From: Rebecca billardiae RCC1528
Taxonomy: Eukaryota; Protista; Haptophyta
Direction: 5' to 3'
Assembly (NCBI GenBank): GCA_965240325.2
Contig: OZ251249.1
Span: forward strand, 434,001-498,000
Length of the DNA stretch: 64,000 nucleotides
Within the stretch, counting starts at the first letter, position 1, and every line of letters starts with the position of its first letter. The position numbers and the translations under genes were made by a program. The notes beneath the pieces are model-generated. The model made no database searches. It was not told where the DNA came from and saw nothing but the letters and a program-made list of their open reading frames with translations. Shown here piece after piece: positions 1 to 50,761 of the stretch.

Positions 1-619
1 CTTTTACCCGCATTACTGTAGTTCGTCGTTCCACAGAGCCTCTTGCCGGAAAATCTATCATCAGTTCATCACATGCCTACGGCTAGCTTTAGCCACATAA
101 GACAAGGCTCAAGACTCCAGAGGCTACGAGTGTCAGCTGACGCGTGGCACAGCCCGTAGACTACCAGGGGTCTCCCTTTCATTCCTTTGCACTGACGCTT
201 TATACGTGTTCCGCCGAGTGGGCACTGAGCACTCGCCCGGTCGCCGCGCGGCGCGTTTGTCGCGCGGCTCGCGGACCGGCGGGCACGGACCCGCGCCGCG
301 CACTCCCGACTCCGATGTCCGCGGGCCAGCGGCGGCGCCAGGCCAGAGACATAGGACTGTTAGTCGGAGCGAACTTATTACTGTAGCAGGAGAGAGCAGA
401 CGACGACAAAGCACGAGCATCAAAGGTCCTTTGATCCAATCAGGGAGCCGCGCAGAAAGAGGCGGCGCAACGGTCGCGCACCTACAGTTTACTAAGAATA
501 AGAGACGCACACAGCTCAGGCAGGCGAGTAGCTTGATGGCTACCAAACCTTCCGGCTGGCCGGACCGCACGCCCGCAACGTGAACGGTGATCACTGGAGC
601 CGCCGGCTTCGGGGCCACG

Positions 620-2404
620 ATGGCGATGGGCGGCATGCGCGTCGTGATCGCCGTGCTGTGCGTGCTTGCTCTCGGCCGGATCGCCTCGGATGGACACGCC
701 ATGCGTGCCCTGCGCGCACAGCCTGCTCCGGGCGCCGAGGCGTCCCTGACGTCGTCAGAGGATGTGGGGCAGCCGTGCACGCTCCGCGCGGGCCGCTTCG
801 ACCTCGTCCCCCATCCGTATGCGGAAAGGTCCGAGGCCGAGGCGAGCGCGTCGCGCAACCTTGTGCTGCTCTTCCTCTCTTTCCCTGACGCCGCGCCGTC
901 CGAGCAGCTCCTGCGCAAGGCGCGACCAGACGTGCTCGCTGGCCAACTCCGCACGCACCTGAGCTCGGCTGACGTCGTGCTGATCCACGAGACGCCCGCC
1001 AACTCGACGGCCGTCGAGACGCTCTACGGCTGCTCCGAGCGCGCCGATCGCCCGGGCGCCGGCGTGCGCATGCGCTGCGTGCGCGCGTCCGACCTGCTCC
1101 CTCCCTCGGCGATCGCGCCGCAGATGCGCCAGTCGTACACGCACCGGTTCGTGCTGTGGGAACACTACCTGCGCGCGCACGCGCACGAGTACGAGGCCGT
1201 GCTGGTGATCGACACGGACGCCGCGGTGCAGGCCGACCCGTTCGTCACGCCGACCTTCGGCGGCGTCATCACCTCGATCGAGAGCACCGCCACGTACATG
1301 GGCGACTGCACCGGGCACACGGAGGGCTGCGTCGACTGCGTGCGCGCGCTGGCGGACGCGGGCTGGTCCTCGGCCGACTGCGATGTCCTGGCTGACACGC
1401 CGATCGTCAACATGGGCGGGTTCTACGGGGCGGCACGGGCGGTGCTCGACCTGATCGAGCGCTTCGTCAACGTGACCGCCTTCTCGCGCCTCGAGCGCCG
1501 CGTCACCTGCTGGGAGCAGCCGCTCTTCGGCCTCGCGCTCTGGGAGGCCGCCGCGTTCGCCCCCCACCCGGTGCTGCTCTCGACCGCCGAGTTCGGCCCC
1601 TTCGTCTCGCTCGCGCGCTCGATGCACGTGCGCGTGGAAGAGGCGCAGGGGGAGGCGCCGGGGGGCGGCCTCGCGCCGCGCGTGCTCTCGCTCGCCTCCG
1701 ACGCGCCCCGTCCGTACGCGGTGCTACACCAGTGGGGGCGCGTGCGCGCCGTCAGCGCCATCGTCGAGGCGCAGGCGCGCGAAGTCGCGGCTGCGGGGCC
1801 GGCACGCATTCGCGCGGCGCGGCGCCGACTGGCGCAGCACGCGCCACGCGCTGGGCCGGTGCAGCCGTCCGGCCTGAACCGGCCGATGACGAACGACCTC
1901 GTCATCGGCCCGCAGTGGCCACAGCTGTGCTCGCGCCACTGCAAGCGCTCGATGCCTGGCTTCCGGCGGATGTTTGAGCGCATCCGCGCGCGGTGCGCGC
2001 TGCCGCGCTTCTCGCCGGCGCATCCGACCATGGACTGCCTCGGGCTGGGGGTTGGGGCGGGCGCCGAGCGCAAGTACGAAGCGCTCTCGCAGCCTGCGGC
2101 GGCGGGCATGCTGGCGTGCGCGCGCGGCGAGGGCGCGCGCCTGCTGCGCGTCGTGCGCTCGCGGCACGAGCCGAGCGCGGATGCCGCGGCCCCGCCAGCA
2201 GCCACCAACAGCGCACCCCGTCCATGGCGGTGGCGCGGGTGGGGCCTGTGGCCTGTGGCAAGGGCTTCCTCGAGCAGCGTTGCGCCCATATGGCCACCTG
2301 CTGGCGACGATCGAGCCCGCCAGCACAAGGCGCTTCTGCCCGCTGGGGCTGCCGTGGGCGTGGTCGGTCGGCTTTCGTCTTTGTCATCAGCAGCGCCGGC
2401 CTGA
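620..2404 (+). CDS. Intronless secreted/type II membrane protein, glycosyltransferase-like (DxD)
   Basis: Long ORF with GC3-biased codons, hydrophobic N-terminus (VVIAVLCVLALG), VLVIDTDAAVQADPF DxD-type motif, NMGGFYG and HQW motifs seen in GT-A-like algal proteins. First ATG at 620. Confidence 0.6.
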   Translation: MAMGGMRVVIAVLCVLALGRIASDGHAMRALRAQPAPGAEASLTSSEDVGQPCTLRAGRFDLVPHPYAERSEAEASASRNLVLLFLSFPDAAPSEQLLRKARPDVLAGQLRTHLSSADVVLIHETPANSTAVETLYGCSERADRPGAGVRMRCVRASDLLPPSAIAPQMRQSYTHRFVLWEHYLRAHAHEYEAVLVIDTDAAVQADPFVTPTFGGVITSIESTATYMGDCTGHTEGCVDCVRALADAGWSSADCDVLADTPIVNMGGFYGAARAVLDLIERFVNVTAFSRLERRVTCWEQPLFGLALWEAAAFAPHPVLLSTAEFGPFVSLARSMHVRVEEAQGEAPGGGLAPRVLSLASDAPRPYAVLHQWGRVRAVSAIVEAQAREVAAAGPARIRAARRRLAQHAPRAGPVQPSGLNRPMTNDLVIGPQWPQLCSRHCKRSMPGFRRMFERIRARCALPRFSPAHPTMDCLGLGVGAGAERKYEALSQPAAAGMLACARGEGARLLRVVRSRHEPSADAAAPPAATNSAPRPWRWRGWGLWPVARASSSSVAPIWPPAGDDRARQHKALLPAGAAVGVVGRLSSLSSAAPA

Positions 2405-3195
2405 TTAATCGGCGGATCGAGGGCGTCGCGCCCGGCCGCCGGCGATACCGCTGGCAGGCGGTGCCACCAGGCTCAGCTGCTCGCGGCATCTATCCGCGGC
2501 CGCCGATGATGACGACGATGATACGCGACGGCATGACGATGACGACGTCGTGAGTGATCGGACGATCGAGTTAGCGCATCGGTCACATCCGCGCGCTGCG
2601 GCGGCGCAGATGACTACTGATAATTCGAGCATCAGACTCGCGACGGTAGTGGCGGCGCGGGGCCGCGCCGGCCGATCCGCGACCGGCGTGCATGTCCCCC
2701 GCGGGTCCGAGTGGCGAGTCCGAGACCGTCCCGGCGCACATCACGTCCAGTGTCACGCCGCGGTACTCTAACTCGGTCGGTCGATGAGTATATATATATA
2801 TATAGCTAGGGGCGGCCGGAGCGGCGCGGACGGCCGGCGCAGGGCGTCGCGGGACGACCGCCGGCCGGGCCGCGGCGGACTCCCGCCGAGACGTGAGACG
2901 GGCTCCGCCGCCGCGGCGAGTCCGAGTGTGCCGGGCAGAGTGTGGCCCGCATTGAGCAGCCCGAGCGGCGCACGCGGATGACCGGACTGACGGCGGGCGC
3001 AGTCCGGCCGGCATGCTGAGTGAGGGTAAGGCCCGCCATGGCCGCCATCACGGCCGCACTTTATTCACGGCGCGCTCCCGCGGATCGACTGCCGTGAGTC
3101 CCGGATAGTCGGGAATCGGCGGCGGCTAGTGACGGCTACTCGGGGAGGGCCGGCCCGACCGTCTCACGCGACGCGCGACGGGCGAGTCGTCGTGA

Positions 3196-3284
<89 letters not shown>

Positions 3285-3339
3285 TATAGAGATATAGATA
3301 TATATAGATATATATAGATATATATATATATATATATAT
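3196..3339. repeat. (TA)n microsatellite with TAGA interruptions
   Basis: Directly visible. Confidence 0.95.
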
Positions 3340-3551
3340 GATCATCATCCGCGCGGCTGATATTAATAATCGTCATCATACACGTAGTATATATATAGCG
3401 CATATATATAATACTTATATACGGTAGTACGTATCGCGCTGTAGTCGTCGTGCGTCAGTATACGTATATATAGTCAGCATGGGCATCCCTGCTGGGCACT
3501 ACCCTTGGCTGGGCCTAGCGCCGACGCGGCCCGCGCGCAGGTCAGCAGATT

Positions 3552-3716
<165 letters not shown>

Positions 3717-4968
3717 TCCGTCATCTACTCGACGACCGCCGCTCGTTGCTGGCGACACTACCGCGGCCCGCCCACCTCAAAGATGTGCGCGTGCCGTTTC
3801 TGGACGCTTCTAGCCTTGATCTCCTGAACATTTGTAGGGGAGATGAGTTTAGTCAGTCGACTGACTAAACTTTTTCTTCAATCAAGGCTCCTCACGACTA
3901 GGCGCCGTCTTGCACGAAATCCCTATCCTCTCGTCTGGCCACGGCCCTTGGTCTGGCGGTCTTGCATCAAATCCTGGACTCGCGAGGGCAAGGGGTGGGC
4001 CCTCTACCTACGGCCGCCAAACCGGTAATACGCGTTCTGAGCCCGGTCTGGTTGCGGGCGGCCCGGGGCCGCCGCGCCCCGGCTGCCGGGGCGGCGACTC
4101 GGGGAGGCGAGCGTTGGCGCGCGCCCGCCGTGGCCGCGGCGGCAGCGGGGTCGTTGGGCCATCCCAGGGGTATCTGAGCCTCTCGACAAGGGGCCGTGGC
4201 TGCGCCTCGCGTGGGCTGTACTGCACGCGGGCAGCCGACACGAATGCGATGCGCCATCCAAGCGCGAGCCCGAGAGCTTTCGCGACACGGGTGCTGCGCG
4301 AGCACGTCTGAAGGAGCGGGCAAGGTCTCGAGAGGAAGCAGGGAGACCACAGAAGTGCTAGCTCGCAACGACAGTCAGGGAGCGCGAGCCGCCCCGCTGC
4401 GCTGCCTGAGCCGGTCGCCCCACGGGCACGGCCACGGGCCACGCGTGGCGGGCAAACGTGACTGCCGCGCGGCAAGGCTTGGTGAGTGTGTACATGCTTC
4501 AAGTGGCTGGTCGCTGGTAGAGCTGCTGCATCCCAATCGCGAGCAGCCAGTAACAGCGACTCGGCCGCGCCGCCGCGGCCGTGCTCCGCAGTTCTGGTGC
4601 CCGCGCGGAACTGACGGTCACGGTTGCGCACCCGCGGGCGGCGAGACCAGTCAGTGGGCCGGCTCTGCCGCCGTCCCTGAGCGTGACCCGCAGTGGCGTC
4701 GCCGGGCTTGCAGGGGGGTCTAAGCCGGCCGCCCGCCCGAACCGGAGCCTGGCACGACCGTATCCGGCCCGCGCCGCCGCGCGCTGCCACAGTGGCCGGT
4801 GGCGGTGGCACGCGTCGGGCCCGCGCAGCCCGCGCGGCCCGCGCCGCCGCGCGGCCCGCGAGCGCGGGCCTCATCCGACGAATAAGACTGACGAGTATCA
4901 CGAACGAATATGGCGCCAATGCGGGATAGTGCGACTGGAGTGCTGAGCCGTGACTGACTACGTCATGC

Positions 4969-6371
4969 CTACCAGCCGTACGTACATCCCCGCCCACTAT
5001 TCGGATGGTAGCCCGCGGTCGGCGGCGGCGAGCCGCCGATGATTGTCCCGCCGGTCGCTGTGACATCCTTCCACTTACGCCAGGTGAAGCGCAGGCCGAT
5101 GACCGACTGGAAGTCGGTGAACAGGACGAGCTGGTGCGGGCTCTCGGCGAGCGTCGTGGCGGGAGAGAAGATCTCGGCGTAGTTGTCCGACGCGTTGCCG
5201 TTCAGCGGAGCGATCGAGAAGAAGGGCCAGCCGGGGGCGAGCGGCAAGCTCGCGTGAGATGCGAGCTCGAGCTCGTACCGGCCGCGCAGCCAGCGGCCCA
5301 GGCGGTCCTCGGCGAAGAGGTCGATGACGGCAGCATCGTACGCGGTGGCATCGACCTGGACCGATGCGCGCTCGGCTGCGTGCAAGCCTCGGCAGTGCGC
5401 GACGACGCGCGTGAGCAGCCGATCGAAGATCGCCGCCTGCTGCTGCTGGCGGACGCGAATGTGCATCGGCTCCCGCCACAGGAACTCACGGTACCGCGCG
5501 ACGAGGTTGTGCACAGCCTCCGCCGGCGGGCGGTACAGCTTCGCGCCGTGCTCGATGGCGACGATGGTGACGTGGCGATACACCTTACTGCTGGCGAGGC
5601 AGCCCGCGACACGGCGCTCGGACTCGACGCACGCCGCAACCAGATCGGCGTCCGCGGCGATGCCAATCTCATCGCGCCCTGCGCGGCGCGCGCGGGCACG
5701 CGCGCAGGACGCGCGTCAACACGGGCGGCGGGGGGGAGCGGGCACGGCGCGCGCGCAGCGGGATCCGATCGTACCGAGATCGAGCACGTGCTCGTCCGCC
5801 TCCCCGAGCAAGCACGGCCGCAGCGGGTAGCCGCGCTGCTGCCCGTCCTCCGCAGCCCCTGTCGTCGTCGGCAGCACGATGCCGCCGTCCGGCTGCTTCC
5901 AGGCCTTCAGGCCGACACCGAACTCGAATGGCATGCGGGCGGTCGGGAGCTGCGCGATGACCTCCTCGGGTGGCTCGGTCAGATTCATGTTCGCCACATG
6001 CAGCACGTTGCGCTTGGCCTTGAACGGCTGCGGCTCGGACTCGCCCTGCCTGGCATCACAGACGACGGGGCGGACGACGACACGCGGTGTTGGCGCGCCG
6101 CGGGTATGCGCGCGCAGGGAGGGATCGCGGGCGGGGCGGCGCACCTCGGGCGCTTGAACGCGGTCCATGCATTCACGAAGAAGTCCAGTGCGCCCCCGCG
6201 CGCGATGAACTCCGCAAGGTTCTTCCACACCATCACCTTGCCATGCACCGTCTCGACCTCGATCTCCTCCTCCTTCCAGTTGCCGACGTGCTCGTAGACC
6301 TCCGCAGGGTGGTAGTCTGCGGTGCGCGTCTTGCCAGGCAAGTCCTCCACGAAGTAGAACCACTTTACCAT
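4969..6371 (-). CDS. Three-exon hypothetical protein (~400 aa) of unknown family
   Basis: ATG at 6371 (MVKWFYFVED..). GT-AG introns at ~6144-6051 and ~5774-5680 join three frames into one ORF (..AFKRPRQGESEPQ..DLGRDEIGI..SKVYRHV..CTYGW*). Coding-like codon use. Confidence 0.7.
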
Positions 6372-6919
6372 GAGGGTCACTGACCCCGCGACGACTTCTT
6401 GACGACGCGGCGCACCTGCGCGAGCCCGGCGCGCTCCGAAGGCCTGCCGTTCTTCTGCAGCCACTGCACGACGACATGGTCTCCGATTCCGATATTGATG
6501 CCGCGCCAGATGACGCCGACATTCCGCAATCGTCCTCCCCGCGTGGCGGCGGTGACGAGCTCCGGCGCGGTGGCCGGCGGGAGCTCCCCGCTCCGTCCAT
6601 GACTTCGACAAACCGCGAGGGGCCGTTCGACCGGCGCTCAGCCGGAACGGAGCGACTCAACCAGGCTCGGCGGTTGCTCAAAAACCTATTCATGCCCTCC
6701 ACCGCCCCTGGTGCAGGCCGGGCGTTGATTGGCCGTCGGTTGCTAGTGCAGTTTTAAGAAAATCTCGTGGAACGTGGCCGGAAAAGGCACCCGCACATCT
6801 TTGAGGTGGATGTGCGCGCGGGCCAGCCGCGACAGCGCCCGTGTCGGCGGCCTGCCGCAGCCGCGCCTCCGCATCAGCAGCGTCGCAGCCCGGCGCAGGC
6901 ACGCGGGCGGCGCTCAGCC

Positions 6920-8101
6920 TCAGCCCAGCTCCACTCGTGCTGCGGCCGGCACCGCGGCCGCCCGGTCCTCACCGGGCGGTGACCGCACGGGCGCACCGTC
7001 GTGCCCGCCACCGTGCCCGCCGGCGCTGCCCCGCACCGCCGACGCCAGCAGGCACACCCATGCAATCTCGACCGCGCCGACCCACATCAGCCGTGACATG
7101 GGCGAGCGGAAGACACCGTAGGTGACGGCGTGCGCTGCACACCCGCGTGGGGGCGGGCCGGGCGGCGCGGGCGGCGCGCAGGGAGATGGCGCGGGGTGGC
7201 ACGTCAGCGGGGTGAGCATGCCCATCCGCGGGGCGCGCGTAGCGGGGCGCCACCCGCCGCGCGCACCGGGTATCCACAGCGCCCACCCCTGCACGCACAG
7301 CCCCGCCGCAAACGGCAGCAGCCCCTCGAGGGAACTCCCCTTGGCGACGCGCAGCGTGAAGACGCTCGCGCCCACCCACGCGGGGCCCCACGCTGGCGGG
7401 GGCAGGGCGGAGGGCGGGGAGGGCAGGCGAGGGGGGGGGGAGAGGGTGGATGCCGGCCACGCGCGGCGCACGAGAGCCGCGCCGCGCGCCCGGACGCGCG
7501 GTGGGCAGCACGCGCGCGCGCGCCGCGCCGCGCCGGGCGGCCGCGGCGCGTCGGCGCGCGCACCGAGTTGGTCGGCGCACACGAGCGCCACCGTCTGAAT
7601 GCGCGGCGAGAGGCCTCGGCCGTACCGCACCATGCTCGCGTCCGCCAGCGTGTACCAGCAGTACGAGAGCGGCCCGTGCAGCACGAAGCCGAGCAGCCCG
7701 AACGTGCGCACGCTCGAGAGGTCCAGAGGCTCGGCCTCCAACAGGCTGCGGCCCTGCGTGTCCGCGATGCGCGCGAGGAGCTGCGAGGTGACCTCGCCGA
7801 GGGAGTGCGTTGCGCCGGACGTGAGCGCCATCTGCACGACCATCGGCCCGAACGACGCGGCCGCGTACGCGGCGGACGCCCGCTGCACGAGGTGCGCCGC
7901 GCGCTCGCCGATCGGCGTCAGCTTCGACTGCAGCAGGTCGCGCGCGCCCTCGAAGGCCGGCACGCGGCCGACGGCGAGGATCCGCTCGGCGGCGTGCTCA
8001 AAGGACGGCAGCTTGCCCTGCGGCAGCAGCGTCGCCTGCGCGTGTGCGAGCAGCCGCTTCCCGGCGACGGGCAGCAGAGATTCTCGCCTGCGCAGCCCCA
8101 T
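6920..8101 (-). CDS. Mpv17/PMP22 family membrane protein (paralog 1)
   Basis: TSGATHSLGEVTSQ, GFVLHGPLSYCWY, DQLAWGP and W-x-LWIPAHAVTY are typical of Mpv17/PMP22. Introns at 7563-7393 and 7266-7135. Confidence 0.85.
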   Translation of the reverse strand: MGLRRRESLLPVAGKRLLAHAQATLLPQGKLPSFEHAAERILAVGRVPAFEGARDLLQSKLTPIGERAAHLVQRASAAYAAASFGPMVVQMALTSGATHSLGEVTSQLLARIADTQGRSLLEAEPLDLSSVRTFGLLGFVLHGPLSYCWYTLADASMVRYGRGLSPRIQTVALVCADQLGARADAPRPPGAARRARACCPPRVRARGAALVRRAWPASTLSPPPRLPSPPSALPPPAWGPAWVGASVFTLRVAKGSSLEGLLPFAAGLCVQGWALWIPGARGGWRPATRAPRMGMLTPLTCHPAPSPCAPPAPPGPPPRGCAAHAVTYGVFRSPMSRLMWVGAVEIAWVCLLASAVRGSAGGHGGGHDGAPVRSPPGEDRAAAVPAAARVELG

Positions 8102-8885
8102 GCTGGCTTGGCGCCTGGCGGCGGCGGCGGCGGGCGGGATGCGCGGCTTGGACCAACGGTGCGATACTGTTGGCGGGCGTCAATCTCGCCTGCCTGAGCT
8201 GTGTGCGTCTCTTATTCTTAGTAAACTGTACTGCGATCTACTGCATCAACTTACTTGCCCAGCCAGTAGTCAAGCTAGCAGTATATTGGTCAAAGTACAA
8301 TACAGTACAATCATCTTTCGCGTAAAACGGGCAAGCGAACTCGGCGTCACTCGATCATTGATGATGTCATTCATCGCAGCTCGGCGGATTCATCGCGCGA
8401 TTTCGATTTTCGCAGCAAAATCATGCGCTGATGACAAGGTAATGTCGCATGAATGGGCGCCCGAGCCAAGTCTGGCTTAGTAGCAGCGAACTCTAAAGCA
8501 GCCGACGGTGCGCCACCGCACGTCACGCCGCCGAGTCCAGCGCTGCCTGCTGGGCGCACAGCGCTGCATGGTCTCAGTGCCCATGCCCACCGCCGCCGCC
8601 GCCAGATGCTCTCATCGCGCACGCTGATGCGCCCGGAGGCGGAGCCGCGGAGCGCGTGACATGCAGGCGCAGCAGTCGGCGATGCCAGGGCGGCGGGTGT
8701 GCCGTCATGGCGGGGCAGGCGGAGCACGCGGCCGCAGGGGGCAGTAGCGGGATGAGCGAGGGTGCGTGCACGCGTGCAGTGGCGCACGGCGTCCAGCTCC
8801 GGTCGCGCGCAGACGCGCACAACCTGCCCGCAGCGTGGATGCCGCCACGTCTGCCGACTCCGTGGCGCGGCACCGTGGCGCGGGC

Positions 8886-9531
8886 TCACGCGCGCGCGGG
8901 GCGCGCCTTGCGCGCGGCTCGCGCGCGCGCCGCACCGAGGATGCAAACCCACATCACCTCGACGGAGTCGACCCACATGAGCCGCGCGAGCGGCGTGCTG
9001 AATGCGGAGTACGTGACCACGTGTGCTGCCGCGCAGGGACCGCAGGCCGCAGCGCAGGGGTGCGTGCGCGCACGAGTCAGCCAGCGCGGCGGCTGGGCCC
9101 GGCCGTGGCGCGCAGGCGTGGGCGCGCGCACCGGGGATCCATAGCGTCCACCCCTGCACGCACAGCGCCGCGACGAACTGGACCAGCCCGTCCAGGCTCC
9201 GCCCCTCCGCCAGCCGCAGCAGCACGCACGAGACGATAATCCAAAACGGGCCCCATGCGATTTGGTCCGCAAAGACGAGCGCGACCGTGCGCAGCGGCCG
9301 CGGCCAGCGCCGGCCGACGGTGGCCATCGACCTATCCGCCGCGGTGAGCCAGCAGTACGACAGCGGGCCGTGCAGCAGGAACCCCAGCGACGCGAAGCGC
9401 AGGATCTTGCCCATGTCCAGATGCAACGGCAGGCCGCCGCCGCCCGGCGTGGCCGTGATGAGCTGCGAGATCGTCTCGCCGAAGGCGTGCGTCGAGCCGG
9501 AGGTGATCATCATCTTCGCCACCTCGTGCAT
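8886..9531 (-). CDS. Mpv17/PMP22 family membrane protein (paralog 2)
   Basis: TSGSTHAFGETISQ, GFLLHGPLSYCW, DQIAWGP and LWIP|AHVVTY. Shares the WIP intron with paralog 1. Both ends approximate. Confidence 0.85.
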
Positions 9532-10205
9532 GGCGGCGGCGCGCGCGGCGCGCGTGTGCGCGGCGGCGGTCGACGGCGCGACGGTCGGTGGCGCGCAGAT
9601 GCGCGCGACGACTTGCGGCGGGAGCGGACGACCGCTCTCGCTTCGTCCGACGCATCAGTCGCAATTCGGACGAATCCCCACCGGACGTTCGCGGGACCCC
9701 CCTCTATTTCTTTGGCGGGACGAACGAAGCAGCGGCGGCGGGTTTTCATTTGGACGAGACATGCGAGCTGAGCTGGCTGGCTGATTTCGGCAGCATGGCC
9801 GCCTCGGCGGCTGCCGGCCGAAGTCGCGTAGGGGGGACCGTAGGGGGCACCGTGCGGTCCTACGAAGGTGTAGTGGCAGCAAGGGCTACCGCGCCCATGA
9901 CCCAGGCACATGCATGCCACCCTCGCCGGCGGAAGGCTGCCACCAGCCACTCGTTGGATGCCTCGCGTGTCGTGTCGCTGACGGGCCGACGGTGCCGGCT
10001 GGACCGTGAGACCGTCTGGCGCCGACCGTGTGACGATTGCTGTCAGCTGCTCGGCGGCCGGCGCGGCAGCGGGGGGTCCGCGTCCAACCACCAGGCGCGC
10101 CCGCGCGCGGATGCCCACCGAGGCAGGCACTGCCGCGGCGCCCGCTGCCGCCCGCCCTGCCACGCGCCGCCTCCCGCGCAAGCGCGCGCATGCGCCTGTG
10201 CGCGC

Positions 10206-13644: not shown

Positions 13645-13841
13645 CGTGCGAGCGTTGACAGCGCAGACCGCGGCGGCGAGGGCTCGGGCCGCCGCGCGGC
13701 AAGGTTTCCCCGACGATGCTGTTGCCATTGTCAGCCAGCACAACAGTCACGTACAGTGTCCGACTAGCTAGCTAGTAGTAGACCGTACTGTATTGTACAG
13801 CTTTGAAGCTGCTCTGAGTCACTGAATGAGAATCTGCACTA

Positions 13842-15540
13842 CTCATACTAGTGATAGTGTAGTCGGCATCATCAGCAAGCAGACTTGTCGTAACATGCGC
13901 CGCGCTGATAATGAGACCCCATACCTAGCTATACTCTCAGCTAGATCGAGCTAGCAGCAGCAGCAGACTACTCGAGCCCACGAGACCCGGAGCAGCCGGC
14001 TATACGACGATCCCGACGCGACGAGATGACGAAGAATAAGACGACGGTCCCGCGACACCGCCTGATGACTCCTCACGCGCGAGGACGCTCACGATGCCGA
14101 TGGCGCCGAACTACCGCTGCTGCCGCGCTCAGGTACGCCGTGGCCACGAGGGTATGCGCGGGTGAGGGCTCGCAATAGTGCGCGCAGTCCTCTTTGAGAC
14201 CACTCCCGTCGCCCGTGTGCCACTCCCCGTGGCGCGCCAACGGCCGGTGCACGGGCAGCACGGGGACGGCGCGCGAGCGCATGATGGCATTCCCGGCGGT
14301 GTTGCGCCACTTCATGCGCGCCTCGTCCGCGGGGCCGAAGGCCGCCACGCACGAGCAGTTGTGCCCCGGCGGGGGGCGGACAAAGCGCGTCCCCGGGTCC
14401 GTGCTCGTGGTGCCAAAGTGGCGTGGCGTCGACTCTCGCCAGAGCATCGCGAGCGGCCGCACCGCGCGCGCGGACGCGCCCGGTGCCGGCGGCGCGCACG
14501 GAACGTTCTGGCTCGCCGGGTCGGCGAGGACGGCGCGCAGCTGGCGCAGGTCCGCGCTGTAGTCGCGCTCGGTGAGCTCGTTGCGATCCCGGCGCAGCAG
14601 CCCGTACGCGGTGTACCCGCACAAGTGACACTTCGCCACGCCGCGCCCTGTAGTCCCGTTGTGCCGGCCCTCGTCGTAAGCCCACCGGCGGCGCGGCGCA
14701 AACACGTGCTGCTCCGGGTGGTCGTGGTCGGGGGTGAGCGCGCGCGCGCTCGTGCACATCTCGGTGGTGAGGTCCGGCGGGCACGTGCGCGGCCACCCAT
14801 CCGCTGGCCCGTTGTACCACAGCCCCATGTTCCAGAACACCACGACTGGCACGTGCGCTCGTCTCTGCTGCGCGCACAGCGCGGTGCGCACGGCTTCGCG
14901 CAGCCCGATCTCGCTGCGCGGGATCACCGGGACGTACAGGTGGTGCGAGCTCAGACGGCCGCTGAGCGCGGGGTTGAGGCGGGCGACGTGCTTCAGCCAC
15001 GTCCTCCACTCGAAGAGCCAGGTGAGCGAGTCGCCCACGAGGACGAGGTGCAGGCCCTGCGCGAATGCGCCGCCAAAGTCGCTCGTCAGCGCGTCGTGCA
15101 CGAGCTCGGCGCAGCGGCCATCTCGTGGCACCGACCACTGGCCTGCATCCAGCCGGGTCAGGCTCATGTATGCGCTATCGCACGCGTAAGGGCCGTGACG
15201 CATCCATTGGACGAGCTTCTCTTGCACGCGTGTGCTGACGCGCGGAAGCAGGTGACGCCCGGCGGCAGCCGCGGCACTGCGCGTCCGACCGTCGACCCAT
15301 TCCATCCGCTCGATGCACGCGAGGGTCTGCGCGAGCGTATCGGGGGGCTTCTGCCTGTCTAATGCTGCCAGCCTCGAGGCCACGCCGATGATGCCGATGT
15401 GCGCATGGCACGGCAGAGCAGCGAGTAGTGACAAGGCTGCCACGGCGAGTCCCGCCAGGCGCGCCGCCATACCGTATCGTGATCGATTCGACGACTACCA
15501 AGACAGTGGTGCCGACTTCTTAAAAAAATCATAGAATGAG
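13842..15540. mobile_element. Putative TA-flanked TIR element carrying one intronless esterase/acetyltransferase gene
   Basis: Left TA|ctcatactagtgatagtgtagtcggca versus reverse complement of the right end TA|ctcattctatgatttttttaagaagtcggca: degenerate inverted match with TA outside both ends. Confidence 0.4.
14073..15470 (-). CDS. Secreted PC-esterase/TBL-like (GDS...DxxH) polysaccharide O-acyltransferase/esterase, intronless
   Basis: Signal peptide, LVLVGDSL, WNMGLW, WRESTPRHF and EDCAHYCEP match the TBL/PMR5 GDS and DCxHxC signatures. Confidence 0.8.
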   Translation of the reverse strand: MAARLAGLAVAALSLLAALPCHAHIGIIGVASRLAALDRQKPPDTLAQTLACIERMEWVDGRTRSAAAAAGRHLLPRVSTRVQEKLVQWMRHGPYACDSAYMSLTRLDAGQWSVPRDGRCAELVHDALTSDFGGAFAQGLHLVLVGDSLTWLFEWRTWLKHVARLNPALSGRLSSHHLYVPVIPRSEIGLREAVRTALCAQQRRAHVPVVVFWNMGLWYNGPADGWPRTCPPDLTTEMCTSARALTPDHDHPEQHVFAPRRRWAYDEGRHNGTTGRGVAKCHLCGYTAYGLLRRDRNELTERDYSADLRQLRAVLADPASQNVPCAPPAPGASARAVRPLAMLWRESTPRHFGTTSTDPGTRFVRPPPGHNCSCVAAFGPADEARMKWRNTAGNAIMRSRAVPVLPVHRPLARHGEWHTGDGSGLKEDCAHYCEPSPAHTLVATAYLSAAAAVVRRHRHRERPRA

Positions 15541-15607
15541 TATACGACAATCCTTAATCACGATGGCCGTCTCACGATGGCAGCCGGACGGCTTAGGGGC
15601 GCGGCGC

Positions 15608-25283: not shown

Positions 25284-27980
25284 ATGCTCAGCAGCCCCAT
25301 CGCCACGTCTTCCGCCGCGGCGCTCGCCTCGGCCAAGCCCGGCGGGCGCGGCAGCTCGGCCGCCGACGCCGACGGCGACGCGTTTGGAACGCCGCCGCCG
25401 CCGCCTGCTTCATCCTCGTCGCCCAAGCAGGCGGCGGCAGCGGCGGCGTGTGGCGCGGACGCGGCGCCGGCGCAGCTGCCTGCCCTGCGCACGTGCAGCC
25501 TGTGCATCGAGGAGGTCGACGCGCAGAGTGGCGTCGAGTGCGCGAGCCGCGTGGCTGCGCACTTCATGTGCAACGGGTGCTTCGCGCGCGAGGTGCGGCG
25601 CGTGAGCGACGACGAGGTCGAGTTCGAGACCCTCGCGCTGCGCGAGGGCCGCGTGCTCTGCCCGCACACCGTCGACCTGCGCACGTGGATGCGCCGCCCG
25701 CGCGGCCCGGACAAGCGCGAGACGTTCCCCGAAGTATCCTCGCTGCTCGAGGCACTGGACGAGGCCTTTGGCGGCGAGATGCCCAGCGCGGCCGAGGCGC
25801 AGCGGCGGTGCGGCTGCGCCTCGGAGCCGTTCTCTGACCGCGCCGTCGCGCTGCACTGCGGCGACGACGAGCTGTACGACCTCTACGCGCGCGCGCGCGC
25901 GCGCGTGCGCGAGCATGCCGTGTACGCTGAGGCGCAGCAGCTGATGAGCGCGCATGCGGACGCGCTCGCGGACGCGATGCGCCGGCCGGACCACCCGGTG
26001 CGGCAGGCGAACCAGCTGCTGGCGCGGCAGCTCCGGCTGCAGCTGCCCAACGCGCGGCAGTGCGGCCGCTGCGCCTTCGGCCCGCTCGACCACTTCGCAT
26101 GCGCCGACCTCGCCCACCACCACGGAGAGGTGACGACGGTCGGCCTGCGGCGCGGCGGCGTCATCTCGAACGGCTGCCCGCGGTGCGGCTGGTTCCACAA
26201 GGACGTGCACGCGTGGCCCAAGTGGGACGGCACGCTCTCCGTCGACCAGGCCGCGATCGACGCGCCCGCGCTCCGCGCCGCCTCGGCGGGCGCGCGCGCG
26301 GCCGCGGCGGGCTCGAGCGACGCGGGCGCGCCGAGCGCCGACGCGCCGCGCGCGCGCGGGGCGGCCGGCTGGCGCTGCCCGCGGTGCACGCTGATGAACG
26401 AGCCCGCGCATCGCACGTGCGAGGCGTGCGTGGGCCCGCGCCCGCCGGCGCGCACGGAGCGGCCGGCGCGCGCGTACACCGCTCGGCTCGAGAGCGTCGA
26501 GGCGCAGCAGAACGCCGCAGAGCTGCGCCTGCGCATGGCGCAGGCGCAGCAGGAGGAGGCGGAGCGGCGCATGCAGCGCGCGCAGGCGATCCAGAGCGAG
26601 GCGGTGCGCATCATGGAGCGGTTCGGCGCGCGCCCGAGCGCGAGCTCGCCGCTGCTGCGCCAGGAGCCGCCGCCGCGCCAGGAGATGGAGGGCGACCTGC
26701 CGCTGCTGATCACGGGCACCTTCTCGCGCGTCCGCGGCGCGCCGGAGGGCCACCCGCCGCTCACGCTCTCGCGCCGGGAGATGTGGGCGAGGCCGGGCGT
26801 GCTCAACGCGTACTGCGGCGCGCACGTCGGCACCGCGCGCGTGATGCTGCGCTGGGTGTGGACCGGTCGGGCGTCGATGGCTCTGCGCGGGCCATCGCGC
26901 GACGCCCCGCTCAACGCCGTGCCCGTGGGAGACGTGCGCACGCGCCTCGGCTGGCACCGGCTCGGCAGCGCGATGACCGACGGTCGCGCCAATCTCCTCA
27001 ACCACGTGCTCGAGGGCTGGTGGACGTGCGGCGGCGTGCGCTTCTGGGTGCAGCAGTCGGGCGCGACGGTGCTCGCGCGCGGCTTCTCGACCACCGCGCC
27101 GGGCACCGTGCCCTTCGGCACCGGCTACCTCTACCTCTCGTTCGAGATGCCGGTGGGCAGCCCGTTTGGCGCGCGGCGGGGGGCGGAGAGCGCGCTCGCG
27201 GTCAGCCTCGAGCCCGGCGCGTGGGCGCGCGAGCCGACCACGCCGGCGGCAGCGGAGCGCGACGAGCAGCTGCGCGTGCGCCTGCGCAGCTGGTTTGCGG
27301 CCACGCCGCAGGCGGACCCTGCCACGCGCGCGGCGCGCATCGAGTACCACCCCCAGTCGCAGATGCGCTTCCAGGCCGCCGTGGCGGCGATGCCGGCGGG
27401 GCTGCGCGCCACCTCGAACGACGCGCTCCCGCCGCCGCTGCGCTGCTCGGGGTGCGAGCGCGTCGCCACCGTCGGCCTCCTCGTCTCGCGCCGCGAGGAC
27501 GGCGCGCCCCGCTGCGTCAGCTGCGAGGAGCGGCGGGTGGGCGCCATGCCGCCGCCGCCACAGCCCGCCACGTCGCCGGCGCTGCCCGCGCTCAGCGCGG
27601 GCGCTCCGGCGTTCGCCATCGGCGCGGCGGAGGAGCCGGTAGCGCGGCCGTCCGCCTCACGGGCGCCCGCTCGGCGCGGACCGGGCCACGCTGCGCGGCC
27701 GGCGGCCGGCGCGGCTAGAGCGCAGCGCCGCGCGCCCGCCGCCTCCGCGGCCCACTCTGCTGCGCCGCCGGATGCACAGCCTGCGGCGGCGTGCGCACCG
27801 CCGGCCGTCTTCCAGTTCGCGCCGCCCGGGGACACGGCAGCGCCTCCGGGCGGGCCGTTCTCGACGGCAGCGTGGCCGGCTGCTCCGGTCGGCGCGCAGC
27901 CTGCCCCACCCGCCCCTGCCGCCTACACGACGCTGCAGGCAGCGCTTGCAGCGCATCGGGGCCTGGGCGGCGGCCAGTGA
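25284..27980 (+). CDS. Intronless RING-like + RanBP2-type zinc finger protein (putative E3 ligase)
   Basis: CSLC..C..HFMCNGC RING-like cluster; second Cys/His cluster CGRCAFGPLDHFAC..H..CPRCGW; RanBP2/NZF WRCPRCTLMNEPAHRTCEAC. First ATG at 25284. Confidence 0.75.
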   Translation: MLSSPIATSSAAALASAKPGGRGSSAADADGDAFGTPPPPPASSSSPKQAAAAAACGADAAPAQLPALRTCSLCIEEVDAQSGVECASRVAAHFMCNGCFAREVRRVSDDEVEFETLALREGRVLCPHTVDLRTWMRRPRGPDKRETFPEVSSLLEALDEAFGGEMPSAAEAQRRCGCASEPFSDRAVALHCGDDELYDLYARARARVREHAVYAEAQQLMSAHADALADAMRRPDHPVRQANQLLARQLRLQLPNARQCGRCAFGPLDHFACADLAHHHGEVTTVGLRRGGVISNGCPRCGWFHKDVHAWPKWDGTLSVDQAAIDAPALRAASAGARAAAAGSSDAGAPSADAPRARGAAGWRCPRCTLMNEPAHRTCEACVGPRPPARTERPARAYTARLESVEAQQNAAELRLRMAQAQQEEAERRMQRAQAIQSEAVRIMERFGARPSASSPLLRQEPPPRQEMEGDLPLLITGTFSRVRGAPEGHPPLTLSRREMWARPGVLNAYCGAHVGTARVMLRWVWTGRASMALRGPSRDAPLNAVPVGDVRTRLGWHRLGSAMTDGRANLLNHVLEGWWTCGGVRFWVQQSGATVLARGFSTTAPGTVPFGTGYLYLSFEMPVGSPFGARRGAESALAVSLEPGAWAREPTTPAAAERDEQLRVRLRSWFAATPQADPATRAARIEYHPQSQMRFQAAVAAMPAGLRATSNDALPPPLRCSGCERVATVGLLVSRREDGAPRCVSCEERRVGAMPPPPQPATSPALPALSAGAPAFAIGAAEEPVARPSASRAPARRGPGHAARPAAGAARAQRRAPAASAAHSAAPPDAQPAAACAPPAVFQFAPPGDTAAPPGGPFSTAAWPAAPVGAQPAPPAPAAYTTLQAALAAHRGLGGGQ

Positions 27981-29172
27981 CGCGGCGGCGGCCGCCTGCA
28001 TGAAGAGCACACAGGGCATGCACACAGCCGGCCTGCGCCGGGCCGACGGCGTCGCCCCGCGCGCCGCCCGCAAGCTCAACGGCGTTCTTCGGGAGGCTGC
28101 TCACGCGCGTCGCGGTGCACTACCGAGCCGTGGACGCGGCCAAGCGGGCCGCTATCCAGATCGAGGCCAGCGCGCTCGACGTCACTGCCATCGGCCTCGT
28201 TGCCGAGGACCGCCCTTGTGCTGGCTGCGCGAGCTCGAGCTCCTATCTCATGCGAGCTTGCCGCTCTGCGGCGCCTGCTGAGACTTCTTCGCGATCGCGT
28301 CTCTCACGGCTATCGAGCACGGGCACGTCGGCTCGACTGCGGCCGCCCGAGCTCGTCCTGGCGAGAGCAGCACAGCCGTCGGGCAGCACTCCCCTGAGGG
28401 AGCAGGGCCGGGATGGAGCACCGCCTCCGCCTGGGCCCGCGGCCTGGGGCACGCGGCGGCGACGGCAGATGCCGCCGCGGCCGAGCGCCTTCCGGAGCAC
28501 TTGGATGAGGGTGAGGTCGTAGTCAATGTCGCCGCCCGCCGGCCTAGCGGCGAGCAGCTGCGGCAGACTGCAGCCGCGGCTGTCGCCCCCGTGCGCCCGC
28601 GTGGGCGCTAGGCCGCTGGCGGATGAGGATGATCGCCGTCGGACGATAACGTCTTAGAACGACGAGGTCGTCGTAGTATAACTATTAACTATATAACCAT
28701 ATATATAACTATATATGTATATAGTTGCCATTATATAAATTATTTATATTAGTTCGAGGGCGCCGCGCGGGCCCGCGCGCGCCGCGGGCCGCAGCGCCCG
28801 CAGCATTCAAGCGGCGGAGCCCTATAGTGATTAATTAGTGAAGCGGCGCGCAGCTGCAGAATTGACTGATGAAGAGGGGCTTGGAGACAGTGAGCGCGCC
28901 GCCTAGTCAGTAGTCGCGGTGCGCTCATGTCGCGATGAAGTGCGGATGAGGTTGTAGTCGACGTCGCACTCGCAGCCCGGCGCGGCGCGCCGGCGCGGGC
29001 CGCGTGCTGCAGATGCAGTCGGCTTGATGCTGGGGAACCTGGCGGCCCCTGGCCCTGGGCTCGTCACACCCCGCACCCCCTGCCCCACCAGTGGGGTGGA
29101 GCGAGGGGCACGGAGGAGGCCAGCGCCAAGGGCCTGCCCCGTCTGGCTCCGGTCACTGTCCGGGACGTCCAG

Positions 29173-32406: not shown

Positions 32407-33091
32407 CAGGGGGGGGGCAGATGAAGTGATGGGTGAGCAGAATGAGACAAAATCCCGGATCGTGTTTTGCGCTCCACCACGATGGCGCTCACGCCCTTCG
32501 CGCACGTCGTCGTGGAGGGCATCAGACGAAGAGTTCAAGCTGCGAGTCTCGTGGGCTAACTCCATGCCGTTGAGGAGCACGAGCACCATCAAGTTTGTCT
32601 CACTTTGGGGGGGGGAGGGCACTTTGAGACAAACCGCGTGCGCATGCCCGACGAGCTCACCAACTGGGGAGAGCAAGCTTCCCATGGGCTCTTGGCGCGT
32701 GTCTGACGTCCCTACTACCTCCCATGGCATGGCCAGCCGTCAGGTTGGCGTCCCCTTGCAGTAGTAGACTACCTTGCTCACGTCACTGAAGGGCACCGTG
32801 CATCGCGGTTCGCGGCCGTCTCACAGTGGCGGGGCACGTTCGGCGGCTACGTTTGGTGCGTGCAGGCCAGGCATGGGCAGCGGAGCGGCCGGCAAACGAG
32901 CGGAGGTGCCAGGCATGCACCTTGGGCACACATGTGACGCGTCTCGACAGACTTGCGTCCACCTCACCGGGCGCTGTAGCGCGTGCGAGGCGGGCGCCAT
33001 GCACCACGCCCAGTGGGCGCCACTGGGCCGCCACTGGGCCGCCGCCTTTGTCTCAAAGTGCCCTCTGTCTCATTCTGCCCTCATCGACCTG
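32407..33091. mobile_element. TA-flanked mariner-type MITE with nested inverted repeats
   Basis: TA|cagg..gcagaatgagaca at left and tgtctcattctgc..cctg|TA at right. Internal perfect 19-bp inverted pair gagggcactttgagacaaa (32615-32633 / 33047-33065). Confidence 0.6.
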
Positions 33092-33945
33092 TAAGCCACC
33101 CTAGACGAATGCTTCAGGACAGATTCCCGTCTGGGCGAGCTTGCGGGGGCTCGGAAGAACGACCCTCAACCCACTACTGACTCGACACCCGCTTGCAAGC
33201 TCACCTCACTGCACTCAGAGTCAGAGTGGGCCGCCCGTGCGTTGCCAGCATGCCTGCGGTCGGCCGTCCTGGGCAAGCCGCGGTGACTCGGAGCCAACTG
33301 GATGGGCTCGGTCGCAGCCGAGTCAGCAGGGAGGTGATCGTAGCGAGTAGCAGCACCGCCGACATGCGGCATGTTCAAGGACGAGGTGCTGAGTCATGCA
33401 GCAGCTCGGCTCGCGGCACGGAGCGGCTCACAGTCGGATGGCGGCGGCGTGGAGTGATTCAGTAGTGATGCCGGCCTCGACCGAAGCGCCAGACACGCTG
33501 CCTACAGGCCTGACTGACAGGATGCACTGAGCAAGCTGCACCAGTGGGTGCGGCAGCGACATGCGTCTCTAGCTGCGCCGTGACCTCTTGACGCGCTGGC
33601 CGCCGCCGGCGCCCAGCGCGCGCGCTGCCGCGCGCCGCGCGGCTCAGGCTGGAGCCGTCTCAGATCCAATCTGACTCACACTTCTCAGAAATTCAAAAAA
33701 ATGGCGGATTTTCTCGCCCAATTTTGGTCCTTCGTCGACGTTCTTGGGCTCTACAGTTTACTATGTTTTAAGACGCGCTTCGGGTCCGCCGTGAGCGCTC
33801 GTCTTGCTGATCGAGACCGCCAGCCGGAGCTGGCGGGCCGTGCTGCCGGTGCATCCGCGCTGCCTCGTCTCCTCCGCGCTGCCTCGTCTCCACCGCCACC
33901 GCCGCCACTGAGACGGCCAATAACGACGCCGCCTTAGCTCGCCAC

Positions 33946-34941
33946 ATGAGCCCCTTCCGTGGCAACGCGCAGCGCAAACGGGTCGACGCGCTCATCGTCC
34001 TCGTTGGCGTCTGCCTCAGCGCTCGTGGCGTGCACTCGCAACCACGGCGATCAACGCTCCAGCAAGACGCCTCTCTCCCTGCGCCCTGTTCGTCGATGGC
34101 AACTGCCGTGATACCTGCCCCCACCGTTTCATCTTGCACGGCCCCAGATCGTACCTCGATAAATGACAAGGGGGCAATGCCCGCCGATCCTTATCCGGTG
34201 GGATTGGGGTGTAGGCTCGTGGTCGTGTCCGCGGGGATGCCGCGTGCTGGGAGCACCATGCAAGACAGGTTGCTTCGGCAGGCGCTCGCTGCCTTTGGGC
34301 TGAAGCCGGGCGTTGCAGGTTACTGGAACTGGCATTGGCACGCCGGCAAACTATCGCTCGCCGAGCGGTTGGGCAAACTGCACAACACCTCGAAACGACT
34401 GCGCGGCTTGAGCACAGATGCTGTGGTCATCATGAAGACGCACGAATTCGACCCTCGTGTGCTACAGCTCTGCGACCGGAGCCTTGTCTTCACGCTGCAC
34501 AGGCACCCCCTCGAGATGCTCATCTCTGCTGCGGGGGAGTGGCACCGCGGAAACATGCGCGAAAGGAAAGCCATCGATTTCCTGGCCAGGGCAATCCACA
34601 ACCACGAATGCTGGCACAGGTACGCTGTCGAGGAGACAGCGAACGCAGAGCTCAGGTCCAATCCCAGTGCTGTGCTGGCTCGGTACGTGCGCAAGATCGG
34701 TGTGCACCTGTACGGAGAGGACTACAGTGCTCGTCTCGTGCACACTGAAGACATGGGCACACTCGCCAAGCGCGCCAAAGGCAACCCGAGCTCTCATGCG
34801 GAGGCGTCTCCCAACATGCTGGGAATGGGTACACATGTGTTCTGCAAATTTCACAGGTGGATGCTGCTGCACGATTATTCGATCGAACCCCAGTCGGCGC
34901 AGGAATATGACCGCGTTCCGCTGCGGTCCTTTTCTGCATAG
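33946..34941 (+). CDS. Sulfotransferase-like protein (P-loop PAPS-binding), intronless
   Basis: Signal/anchor LIVLVGVCL, SAGMPRAGST 5'-PSB motif, IMKTHE, LHRHPLEMLIS 3'-PB motif. Confidence 0.75.
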   Translation: MSPFRGNAQRKRVDALIVLVGVCLSARGVHSQPRRSTLQQDASLPAPCSSMATAVIPAPTVSSCTAPDRTSINDKGAMPADPYPVGLGCRLVVVSAGMPRAGSTMQDRLLRQALAAFGLKPGVAGYWNWHWHAGKLSLAERLGKLHNTSKRLRGLSTDAVVIMKTHEFDPRVLQLCDRSLVFTLHRHPLEMLISAAGEWHRGNMRERKAIDFLARAIHNHECWHRYAVEETANAELRSNPSAVLARYVRKIGVHLYGEDYSARLVHTEDMGTLAKRAKGNPSSHAEASPNMLGMGTHVFCKFHRWMLLHDYSIEPQSAQEYDRVPLRSFSA

Positions 34942-35368
34942 AAAGAATCAACGCAGTTGGGGGCCTGCGGTGGCCGTGCAATCGCGTCAGCTCTCCGCCG
35001 TGGCAGTTCGCCAGTTGAGTTCGGAAGTAGTTAGTACGAGTCCGACAGTCTGCCTGCCTCAGCCTGTGCCGGACTGCTTGGCGGCTTGCGCCGAGTAATC
35101 CGGGCCACTCACTCTCACTCGGGCACATGCACTTCGTCACACCGTGACCGTACATGCAATCGCGGGCAATAAGAAGTCAGAGATCTGCCGGCTAGCCTCG
35201 GTTTCTTAGCTACTGTTCGGTAGCCCGAGCGCCTACGGAGCCAGGGATGCCGAACATTGAATCAATGAAAAATAAAAATCTATGAATCATTGGGTCATTG
35301 ACACTGAATAGCGGCAGGATTCAATCGGATTTCCTGACCAGTAGTAGCAGTGACTAGTAATTCGGAAC

Positions 35369-35619
35369 ACAAAATACCACTGGGGGCGAAACACAGCTGT
35401 CGGATGCGAGGCTCCTGAGACGGACAGTGTCCGGTCAGTGGAAAACACTGTGGGGGAAGTTTGAATCCGGGAAAGCGGGTAATCTGTCGAGCCATCTCGT
35501 ATTCTTTCATAAGGCATTCCGGTCTGTTTTTCATACGAGCTCCCGGACACTATCCGTCTCAGGAGCCTCGCATCCGACGGGGCTCCTCACTGGCGCTTTC
35601 GCCCCCAGTGGTATTTTGT
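35369..35619. mobile_element. Short foldback MITE (~250 bp)
   Basis: acaaaataccactgggggcgaaa..gtcggatgcgaggctcctgagacgga.agtgtccgg is inverted at 35543-35619. Inner TA|ccactgg..ccagtgg|TA. Confidence 0.75.
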
Positions 35620-35930
35620 AAGCCCCTTGGCAGCACTGCCGCGTGCGCGCCGAGCGCGGCGTGCGGGGCTGTGACCGCGGCGGGCCACCGACGGCGAGTC
35701 ATGGACAGTACTTAAAAGATGGTGTACCCTGTGATTTTTGCAGGAATCTGTAGTGTCACTGCACCCTCCCCCCCTGCCCCATAGGGCTAGGGGGCCCATA
35801 GGGGCGACACCCGAGATACCCAGTAACTAGGCTGAGCGGCTTTCTACGGCCTCTGTCTGTAGGGACATGTCCCGGAAGTCACCGGCTGCCCATAGTGTGG
35901 CTGTGTACACAATACTGTTTGATTCCTCTG

Positions 35931-36594
35931 TATTACCGATTTCAGGCACCCGTGGAAGTCAATCGTCGAAGTCAGAATCAGTTCGGATCAGATCTGCTCT
36001 GGTCCTTCATCCGAATCGATCGCGATCGAAGTGGCCGTGGGTCGCTTGCGATCGATTGTGATTGGCCAGAATCCCAGATCAGTCCGCCGATCCAATCTCG
36101 ATCCAAACAGAGTTGAACAGCTAGCTCGTGATTCTGATTTGATCTCGATCGATCGGTGAACCTCGATTATTGATTGGGATCGATCGCGTTTGAGATCGAA
36201 ATGATTGATTTACGAAACGCGTTCAGCGAATCGATTCACACCTCATCATGACGTCTATGTATCACTTACAAAATTGCGACCGATTTAGCTGGTATCAGTC
36301 ATCGCAAAAGGCGAGCCAACGATTTGCTTCTTCGTGATCGATTGCGATCGATCACGATCGTTTGTGAATCGGAGTAGTAGATGATCGATCGCGATCGAAC
36401 GCACCCGTTTTGTCGATCGAAGCCAATATCGAATCGTGATTTTGATTGATCGGGTTCGCGATCGGCAAATCGATTCGCGATCGAACTCGTGATCCACAAA
36501 CGCGATCGATCTCGATCGATCTGATCGGCACGATCGAAGAGGGTCAAAGTGAATCGCGATTGACTTCCACGGGTGCCTGAATAAATCGGTAATA
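35931..36594. mobile_element. MITE with ~35-bp TIRs and GATC-saturated interior
   Basis: tattaccgattt(at)tcaggcacccgtggaagtcaatcg at 35931-35965, inverted at 36557-36594. Interior made of gatcgatc/cgat motifs. Confidence 0.8.
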
Positions 36595-36603
36595 GTTAGT
36601 TAT

Positions 36604-37110
36604 AGTGGCTGGCGGCGGCCGCGCCGCGCCCGGCGCCAAGACCCCCGCCCCCCCACCCGGCACCCGACCGCCCGACCCGACCCAGACTGCCCGACTGCCA
36701 CGCCAGTCCGGGCAGGCTAGTCCGGACCAGTCCGGGCCGCATGGCCGCCGCGGCGCCGCGCCGCGCCAAGACCCCCCCCGCCCCCGGACCCGCGACCGCC
36801 CGACCCGCGACCCGACTGCCCGACTGCCAGTGCCACGCCGCGCCAACCCGAAGACGGTCCCGCCCCCCCGCCCCCCCCCCGCCCCCGCCCCACCCCGACC
36901 CGACCGCCCGGACCCGCGCGACTGCCCGACTGCCACGCCAGTCCAGGGCTAGTCCGGACCAGTCCGGGCAATGGCCGCCGCGGCGCCGCACCGCGCCAAG
37001 ACCCGCCCCCCCCGCACCCGACCGCCCGACCGGCGACCCGGCCGACTCCCGACCCGCGACACGGCTGACTCGACAGTGTAGTGGCGACAGTGCCCGACTG
37101 CCAGTCGGCC
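36604..37110. repeat. Subterminal-type repeat array (cccgac/cccgactgcc units)
   Basis: Repeated cccgactgcccgactgccacgccagtcc blocks, two to three larger units. Begins tagtggctg, resembling a hAT terminus. Confidence 0.7.
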
Positions 37111-37299
37111 GGCACGCCGCGCCAATCATTTCGTCTCCCGATTTTTCTCGTCGCTCGTCGCGCTCGTCAAAAATCGCCACCGGCCGTCCGACGGCTCGCC
37201 GCGACGAAGGTCGGGAAGGGGCTCGAGAGCCTCGACTGGACGACTGCGCCGCCTCATGTCAGGTGTAGTGCTGGACACATCGTTCGGGTGCCCCGGCGG

Positions 37300-41236: not shown

Positions 41237-41250
41237 GTGCTCGGGGTGTC

Positions 41251-42262: not shown

Positions 42263-42555
42263 GGGTGTCTCGCCCACCCACCACGCCTGCCTCTCGCTTC
42301 CCGATTTCGGCAACTGTCAGAAATCGCCCGCCAACAAAAGAAACGGCGGAAATAAAGTATATTAAAGTGGCGGAAGATGCATCCGATCCGCAGCGACTCG
42401 CGGCATCCGCTGCGGATCGATGGCGCGAGCAGGATGCACAGGGTTCTTAATTAAAACATACCAGTAGTAAACTGTCGTAGTTTACTGAGACGCCCAGTGG
42501 AATCCTGTTCACAGTACTACCAGCAAGGGCGGTACCAGTACGAGGACAGTCCGAC

Positions 42556-49300: not shown

Positions 49301-50761
<1,461 letters not shown>

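Follow-up and report, generated by a model that had tools for sequence, protein, structure and literature searches.

A candidate Pack-type unit with Tc1/mariner-pogo-like ends encloses intact genes in the haptophyte Rebecca billardiae

The window analysed here, a 64-kb stretch of Rebecca billardiae DNA, contains a 7.7-kb unit bounded by two inward-facing terminal inverted repeats (TIRs; Table 1). The repeats, with outer ends at 485 and 8228, are exact reverse complements at 44 of 44 positions (46 bp counting the TA dinucleotide at both sides), and inward of the 44 bp the complementarity between the two ends breaks off abruptly. No other non-simple inverted repeat in the 64-kb window is as long; the chance expectation of the pair is ~1e-15, and a scan of the window at up to 18 mismatches detected no third copy. 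The host DNA is eukaryotic, with ~70% GC and short, GC-rich introns. Between the TIRs lie a glycosyltransferase (GT)-like gene, a nested element with an orphan gene, and an Mpv17-like gene.

Table 1. Features of the TIR-bounded unit and its right flank (window coordinates; a dot in the strand column means no strand).
Feature	Position	Strand	Remarks
TA target-site dinucleotide outside left end	483..484	.	sequence inspection
Left TIR, 44 bp, CAGT start	485..528	+	short-read contig begins inside, at 504
Intronless GT-like ORF, 594 aa, DTD (DxD-type) motif	620..2404	+	ESM Atlas features
Three (TA)n microsatellite tracts, AT-rich spacers	2789..3714	.	2789-2804, 3198-3339, 3554-3714
Nested 3,036-bp element, CAC...GTG termini, 31-bp imperfect TIRs	3773..6808	.	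multi-copy
Three-exon orphan gene, ~400 aa	4969..6371	-	exons 6371-6145, 6049-5775, 5678-4969; GC3 0.87-0.90
Mpv17a, intact three-exon Mpv17/PMP22-like gene	6920..8101	-	exons 8101-7564, 7392-7267, 7134-6920
Subterminal short stretch common to other end-family copies	8169..8184	-	X1 loose ends
Right TIR, 44 bp	8185..8228	-	X1 depth 120 in its bin
TA outside right end	8229..8230	.	contig L005 continues across into TIR, no branch
Mpv17b, outer Mpv17-like paralogue, outside element	8886..9531	-	head-to-tail with Mpv17a

The short-read evidence consists of public assembled contigs (Logan) from ERR148471xx, probably derived from the assembled strain, and from a run designated X1. Four of the Logan contigs are identical to the window: L001 (504-3221), L002 (4841-6808), L006 (5593-6806), and L005 (8205-10662). 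L001 crosses the junction between the left TIR and the interior, and L005 crosses the junction between the right TIR and the flank, such that short reads, probably of the assembled strain, support two of the four TIR junctions, and an assembly artefact is ruled out for these two. The two source-strain contigs that reach into a TIR end there (at 504 and 8205), as expected for a repeat. A spliced-leader relic, considered on account of the genes that start just inside the TIRs, is ruled out because Mpv17a retains its introns and the repeat is bounded by TA.

The GT-like ORF reads inward from a start 91 bp inside the left TIR. Its ESM Atlas features match, at 0.95-0.96, clusters with Nucleotid_trans and GT_PLOD members, while no Pfam match was found for it. 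Its relatives are distant (~30% identity, with 30% to P0004, a protein from a 1.4-kb JGI contig) in a search that ran on clustered sequences, where relatives at 50-90% identity would be hidden, and the 90% cluster of the protein contains one member. Since 504-3221 is covered by a single unbroken contig, L001, there is no near-identical GT parent with other flanks, and an identical second copy of the entire left arm may exist given the contig break at 504.

The nested element is a separate passenger within the TIR unit. Its own TIRs comprise 17 bp of exact complementarity followed by 14 imperfect bp. Three observations indicate that it is multi-copy: contig L002 terminates precisely at 6808, the outer edge of the element; an X1 contig matches 6649-6808 and then departs into a different flank; and an X1 variant site at 5592 falls at the break of contig L006. 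The CAC...GTG termini and TIRs fit a Transib/Chapaev/CACTA-like element, but the 2-5-bp target duplication expected of such elements is absent, and the element was not classed there; this copy has no target duplication of any length from 2 to 12 bp. Spliced genes were searched per exon or as unspliced window ORFs, and no homologue of the orphan gene was found in the exon-wise searches, the largest of which covered the query without exon 1. Exon 1 matches Terminase_6C at an insignificant E of 0.057, and the single-sequence fold of exon 3 (pLDDT 31) is unusable. A decayed relic of exon 3 is present at 28080-28308 of the window. An earlier note on this DNA had described the TIR pair, with its CAGT start and outer TA, much as we find it at 485-528 and 8185-8228; its description of the cargo as ordinary genes holds for the GT-like and Mpv17-like genes and fails for the three-exon gene, which is an orphan within a multi-copy nested element.

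Mpv17a also reads inward, from a start 83 bp inside the right TIR. Each of its exons is 61-70% identical to the MMETSP protein P0002, a product of another species' transcript that has a weak match to PF04117. Between Mpv17a and P0002, 59-76% of four-fold sites differ, and protein identity of 61-70% in the presence of so many changed four-fold sites indicates that Mpv17a is conserved under selection. Judged from these comparisons of sequence, Mpv17a is the conserved orthologue of the other species' gene. Mpv17b, on the other side of the right TIR, is 50-61% identical to Mpv17a and 45-56% identical to P0002, and the position of the second intron is common to Mpv17a and Mpv17b. Because Mpv17a is nearer to P0002 than to Mpv17b, the tandem pair long predates the TIRs, which are 100% identical and one of which now separates its two members.

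Three ends of the family are seen to abut TA, two at this locus and one in X1. Specifically, one X1 contig passes through the TA into another flank, which matches the end of a window repeat (50620-50657) that leads there straight into a (TA)n tract, with the TIR absent. The repeat ending at 50657 is thus half of a related empty site and supports TA as the target. In at least five X1 contigs, the match to the end extends over 48-60 bp, as far as 8181, 8175 or 8169, before a foreign interior begins, with loose ends before 8169 (at least three contigs), 8175, and 8181. For X1 contigs placed on 3730-9700, the summed depth, which is low and noisy and gives no copy number, is 120 in the right-TIR bin and 1-10 in the remaining covered bins, which implies ends in the tens to hundreds. 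A related, older pair of this end type, likewise convergent, flanks 33754-42474 and encloses two inward-facing genes. In JGI metagenomes, the exact TIR pattern gave 0 matches, and a degenerate pattern gave seven matches at 16-23/44 identity that had no preceding TA and no partner and were attributed to chance.

The ends thus show TIRs, a 5'-CAG(T) terminus, a TA target preference, and dispersed multi-copy occurrence, and a CAGT start with TA is the signature of ITm (IS630-Tc1-mariner) elements (PMC13469147). They resemble those of ITm/pogo elements such as yeast Dici, which has CAGT-starting TIRs with TA on both sides (PMC13469147), except that the Rebecca unit has no recognised transposase inside: none was recognised by Pfam, PHROGs or the ESM Atlas in the pieces searched, which gave no match to any Pfam family. 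These features support assignment of the ends to a young, multi-copy, TA-targeting family of Tc1/mariner-pogo type with variable interiors, in agreement with the young, non-autonomous Tc1/pogo-type ends proposed earlier; the suggested check for copies of the 44-mer was borne out in public contigs, which contain many ends, other interiors, and a further TA-flanked end. Furthermore, non-TE coding DNA (Mpv17a and the GT-like gene) stands between the TIRs with no transposase match, as in Pack-type elements, making the unit a candidate Pack-Mariner or Pack-TIR.

Four histories can be considered for such a unit. In the first, the two ends are solo remnants of unrelated origin that happen to face each other and never act as a unit. 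The abundance of the end and the lack of evidence for movement agree with this, but the 64-kb window contains just these two copies, which converge, match exactly, and each extend intact to the TA, and the related ends at 33754 and 42474 are likewise convergent; we consider chance pairing very improbable.

In the second, the unit is a true mobile carrier, built elsewhere or earlier and transposed here by cut-and-paste without leaving copies, and its TIRs may drive the inward-facing genes. The perfect TIRs with TA on either side, the start of both terminal genes 83-91 bp inside a TIR and facing inward, and the two inward-facing genes within the related older pair all speak for this history, and the contig break at 504 leaves room for the identical second left arm. 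No trace of movement was seen in the contigs. In particular, contig L005, which is recorded in two samples and is probably of the assembled strain, runs unbranched across the TA and into the TIR as far as 8205; an empty site would make the contig stop at the TA, so none is present there, and a fixed insertion in the assembled strain would likewise leave no empty site. No joint across an empty site was seen in X1, whose coverage ends short of the right flank, and neither the Logan contigs nor X1 contain a second site or second flank pair for the GT/Mpv17a cargo. Moreover, a block arriving from a distance would almost never land head-to-tail ~1 kb from an old paralogue, which points to a local process. 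We therefore regard the mobile carrier as quite unlikely. The broader proposition, that minimal mariner/pogo ends genome-wide bracket whole intact host genes, conserved ones included, and relocate them by cut-and-paste without a parent copy, with ends less than 100 bp upstream of genes, facing inward and possibly acting as promoters, also appears unlikely; if true, it would mean routine gene relocation instead of fragment capture. The earlier note had proposed that a young non-autonomous element moves whole intron-containing genes. That proposal finds no support so far: the empty site that it had suggested looking for was not seen in L005 or X1, and no near-identical GT parent was seen. Its own caveat, that the DNA may be native, gains weight: an old Mpv17 tandem pair straddles the right TIR, a stronger signal than any for movement.

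In the third history, a single insertion at TA, with a true target duplication, suffered an internal break that was filled from nearby DNA, as in the gap-filling model, in which an element takes up copies of neighbouring sequence whose source persists within a few kb (PMC8277862). Mpv17a would then have been copied from a parent immediately beyond the window's left edge, and the cargo would be a duplicate. Local copying would explain the nearby Mpv17b without two deletions and would fit variable interiors behind a short common end, and for 57% of animal Pack-TIRs the parent is no more than 15 kb away, in most cases no more than 5 kb (PMC8277862). Several observations weigh against it. No GT parent is seen; positions 1-482, left of the unit, do not resemble the 5' region of Mpv17a; and the breakpoints in PMC8277862 are internal, with a median of 4.6% of the element removed, whereas here almost all of it is gone. 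The X1 depth of Mpv17a is also low, the region being represented by a single 272-bp contig at depth 3, compared with 120 for the TIR bin. That no contig was retrieved for the left flank or for Mpv17a, in a retrieval in which the GTG control worked, carries no weight, since all contigs returned exceeded 1 kb and shorter ones are perhaps off record. A parental Mpv17a may lie left of window position 1. Overall, we hold gap repair, the chief rival of assembly in place, to be doubtful, with an appreciable share of the probability, and the same applies to its account of Mpv17a as a duplicate.

The history we tentatively favour, at slightly short of an even chance, is that of a Pack-type Tc1/mariner-pogo hybrid assembled in place from two neighbouring insertions. 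Two members of an abundant non-autonomous family, oriented alike, would have inserted at TA sites separated by ~8 kb, immediately upstream of the GT gene in one case and of Mpv17a in the other. Each insertion would then have lost all but its outer 45-60 bp through incomplete excision or deletion. The remaining ends would face each other across DNA of which at least a part is resident, and the whole block could be excised by a transposase provided in trans. Both this two-insertion history and the competence of the block to move are inferred. Assembly in place is favoured because no parent is seen, Mpv17a occupies the position of a tandem neighbour, and nearly all of the element is gone. Since the target is TA, the ends of two insertions would resemble a single duplication, which would hide the two-insertion origin. 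Against an in-place origin, no remnants of lost inner ends were found between the TIRs, so two clean deletions are needed. A point in its favour is that other copies of the family diverge beyond the 48-60 bp of the end that they retain.

Gene capture by mariner-type ends has already been described (PMC8903248, PMC8277862). The Pack-Mariner elements known from rice and maize (Gisby and Catoni 2022, PMC8903248) are likewise non-autonomous, with mariner-type TIRs and host coding DNA; they are mostly low copy, and acquisition via neighbouring insertions is proposed there. The examples considered from that work span a few hundred bp and carry gene fragments of 58-280 bp with a parent elsewhere, whereas the Rebecca unit spans 7.7 kb and carries whole genes, one of them spliced and conserved, with no parent found. 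Animal Pack-TIRs, including Pack-Tigger1 (Tan et al. 2021, PMC8277862), share with it TcMariner ends, TA, and non-TE DNA, and are mostly single-copy with a bias toward nearby DNA. Unlike the Rebecca unit, which retains ~45-60 bp per end and for whose cargo no parent is seen, they contain duplicated filler with a parental copy by definition and retain most of the TE. A parallel to the favoured in-place hybrid is hybrid Pack-CACTA (Catoni et al. 2019, PMC6379663), with complementary inner-end loss from two neighbouring insertions and a single remaining pair of ends that encloses resident genic DNA. The Pack-CACTA model invokes neighbouring insertions in direct orientation (PMC6379663), and the same model is used for Pack-Mariner (PMC8903248). 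Pack-CACTA belongs to another superfamily, the spacers recovered there are short, and its target duplication would reveal a two-insertion origin, whereas TA hides one.

The usual cargo of Pack-type elements is gene fragments, and acquisition of entire genes is described as exceptionally rare in Pack-MULEs and Helitrons (PMC6431247). Our literature searches turned up no Pack-type element from a haptophyte. Relative to described cases, the locus is unusual in its cargo of whole intact genes, its minimal ends, and its haptophyte host. If it is an in-place intermediate, it would provide a natural snapshot of the neighbouring-insertion step that was merely extrapolated in Arabidopsis; if such blocks move, they would offer an alga a route to reshuffle cell-surface sugar-modifying genes. 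A sigma-70 promoter scan is inapplicable because the host is eukaryotic. Promoter-like words in 8231-8480 recur in other upstream regions but carry no weight, since the stretch doubles as the 3' flank of Mpv17b.

One repeat is present in two copies in the window (93-97%), one of which stops at a (TA)n tract. At another locus, found in run X1 (a public sequencing run whose contigs were compared with the window), a copy of the TIR of the main unit, the 7.7-kb block between exact 44-bp TIRs, directly adjoins the same end of this repeat. A near-perfect tandem repeat (period about 1,795 bp, 2.4 copies) carries 204/195-bp subrepeats within every unit.

Inside the main unit lies a 3-kb, multi-copy element with the termini CAC...GTG, the cargo of which is a three-exon orphan gene. 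A perfect 26-bp palindrome sits immediately inside its left end, and a target duplication is absent around the window copy. A frameshifted relic of exon 3 of the orphan gene (74% at the nucleotide level), at which the CAC ends are missing, is located directly past the end of a cysteine-rich 898-aa ORF. The inner Mpv17 gene, a three-exon Mpv17/PMP22-like gene near the right TIR of the main unit, has two introns that are both multiples of three and stop-free, so that without splicing the ORF stays open over 393 codons.

Coordinates of the features in the window
Feature	Position	Strand
Repeat, two copies	49294-50657; 62960-63972	
Tandem repeat	56494-60866	
CAC...GTG element	3773-6808	
Palindrome	3846-3871	
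Exon-3 relic	28080-28308	
Cysteine-rich ORF	25284-27980	
Inner Mpv17 introns	7393-7563; 7135-7266	
Older pair of ends	33752-42476	
50-bp repeat	121-169; 42080-42129	
TA-CTC-type ends	13840-15542	
465-aa ORF	14073-15470	minus
16-bp match	55460	
Imperfect inverted pair	46051-49298	
Small MITE-like inverted-repeat units	35369-35619; 35931-36594; 32615-33065	

An older pair of ends is related to the TIR of the main unit, with the first 10 bp identical and the outer TA missing at the right end. Two ORFs, both reading inward, lie between these ends together with several small inverted-repeat elements, and the interior of the pair has a 50-bp repeat (90%) in common with the left flank, outside the left TIR of the main unit. 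Degenerate inverted ends of the TA-CTC type flank an intronless 465-aa ORF, and one of these ends has an additional 16-bp match elsewhere in the window. A further inverted pair, imperfect (about 50 bp, 80%), is embedded in TA/TG microsatellites.
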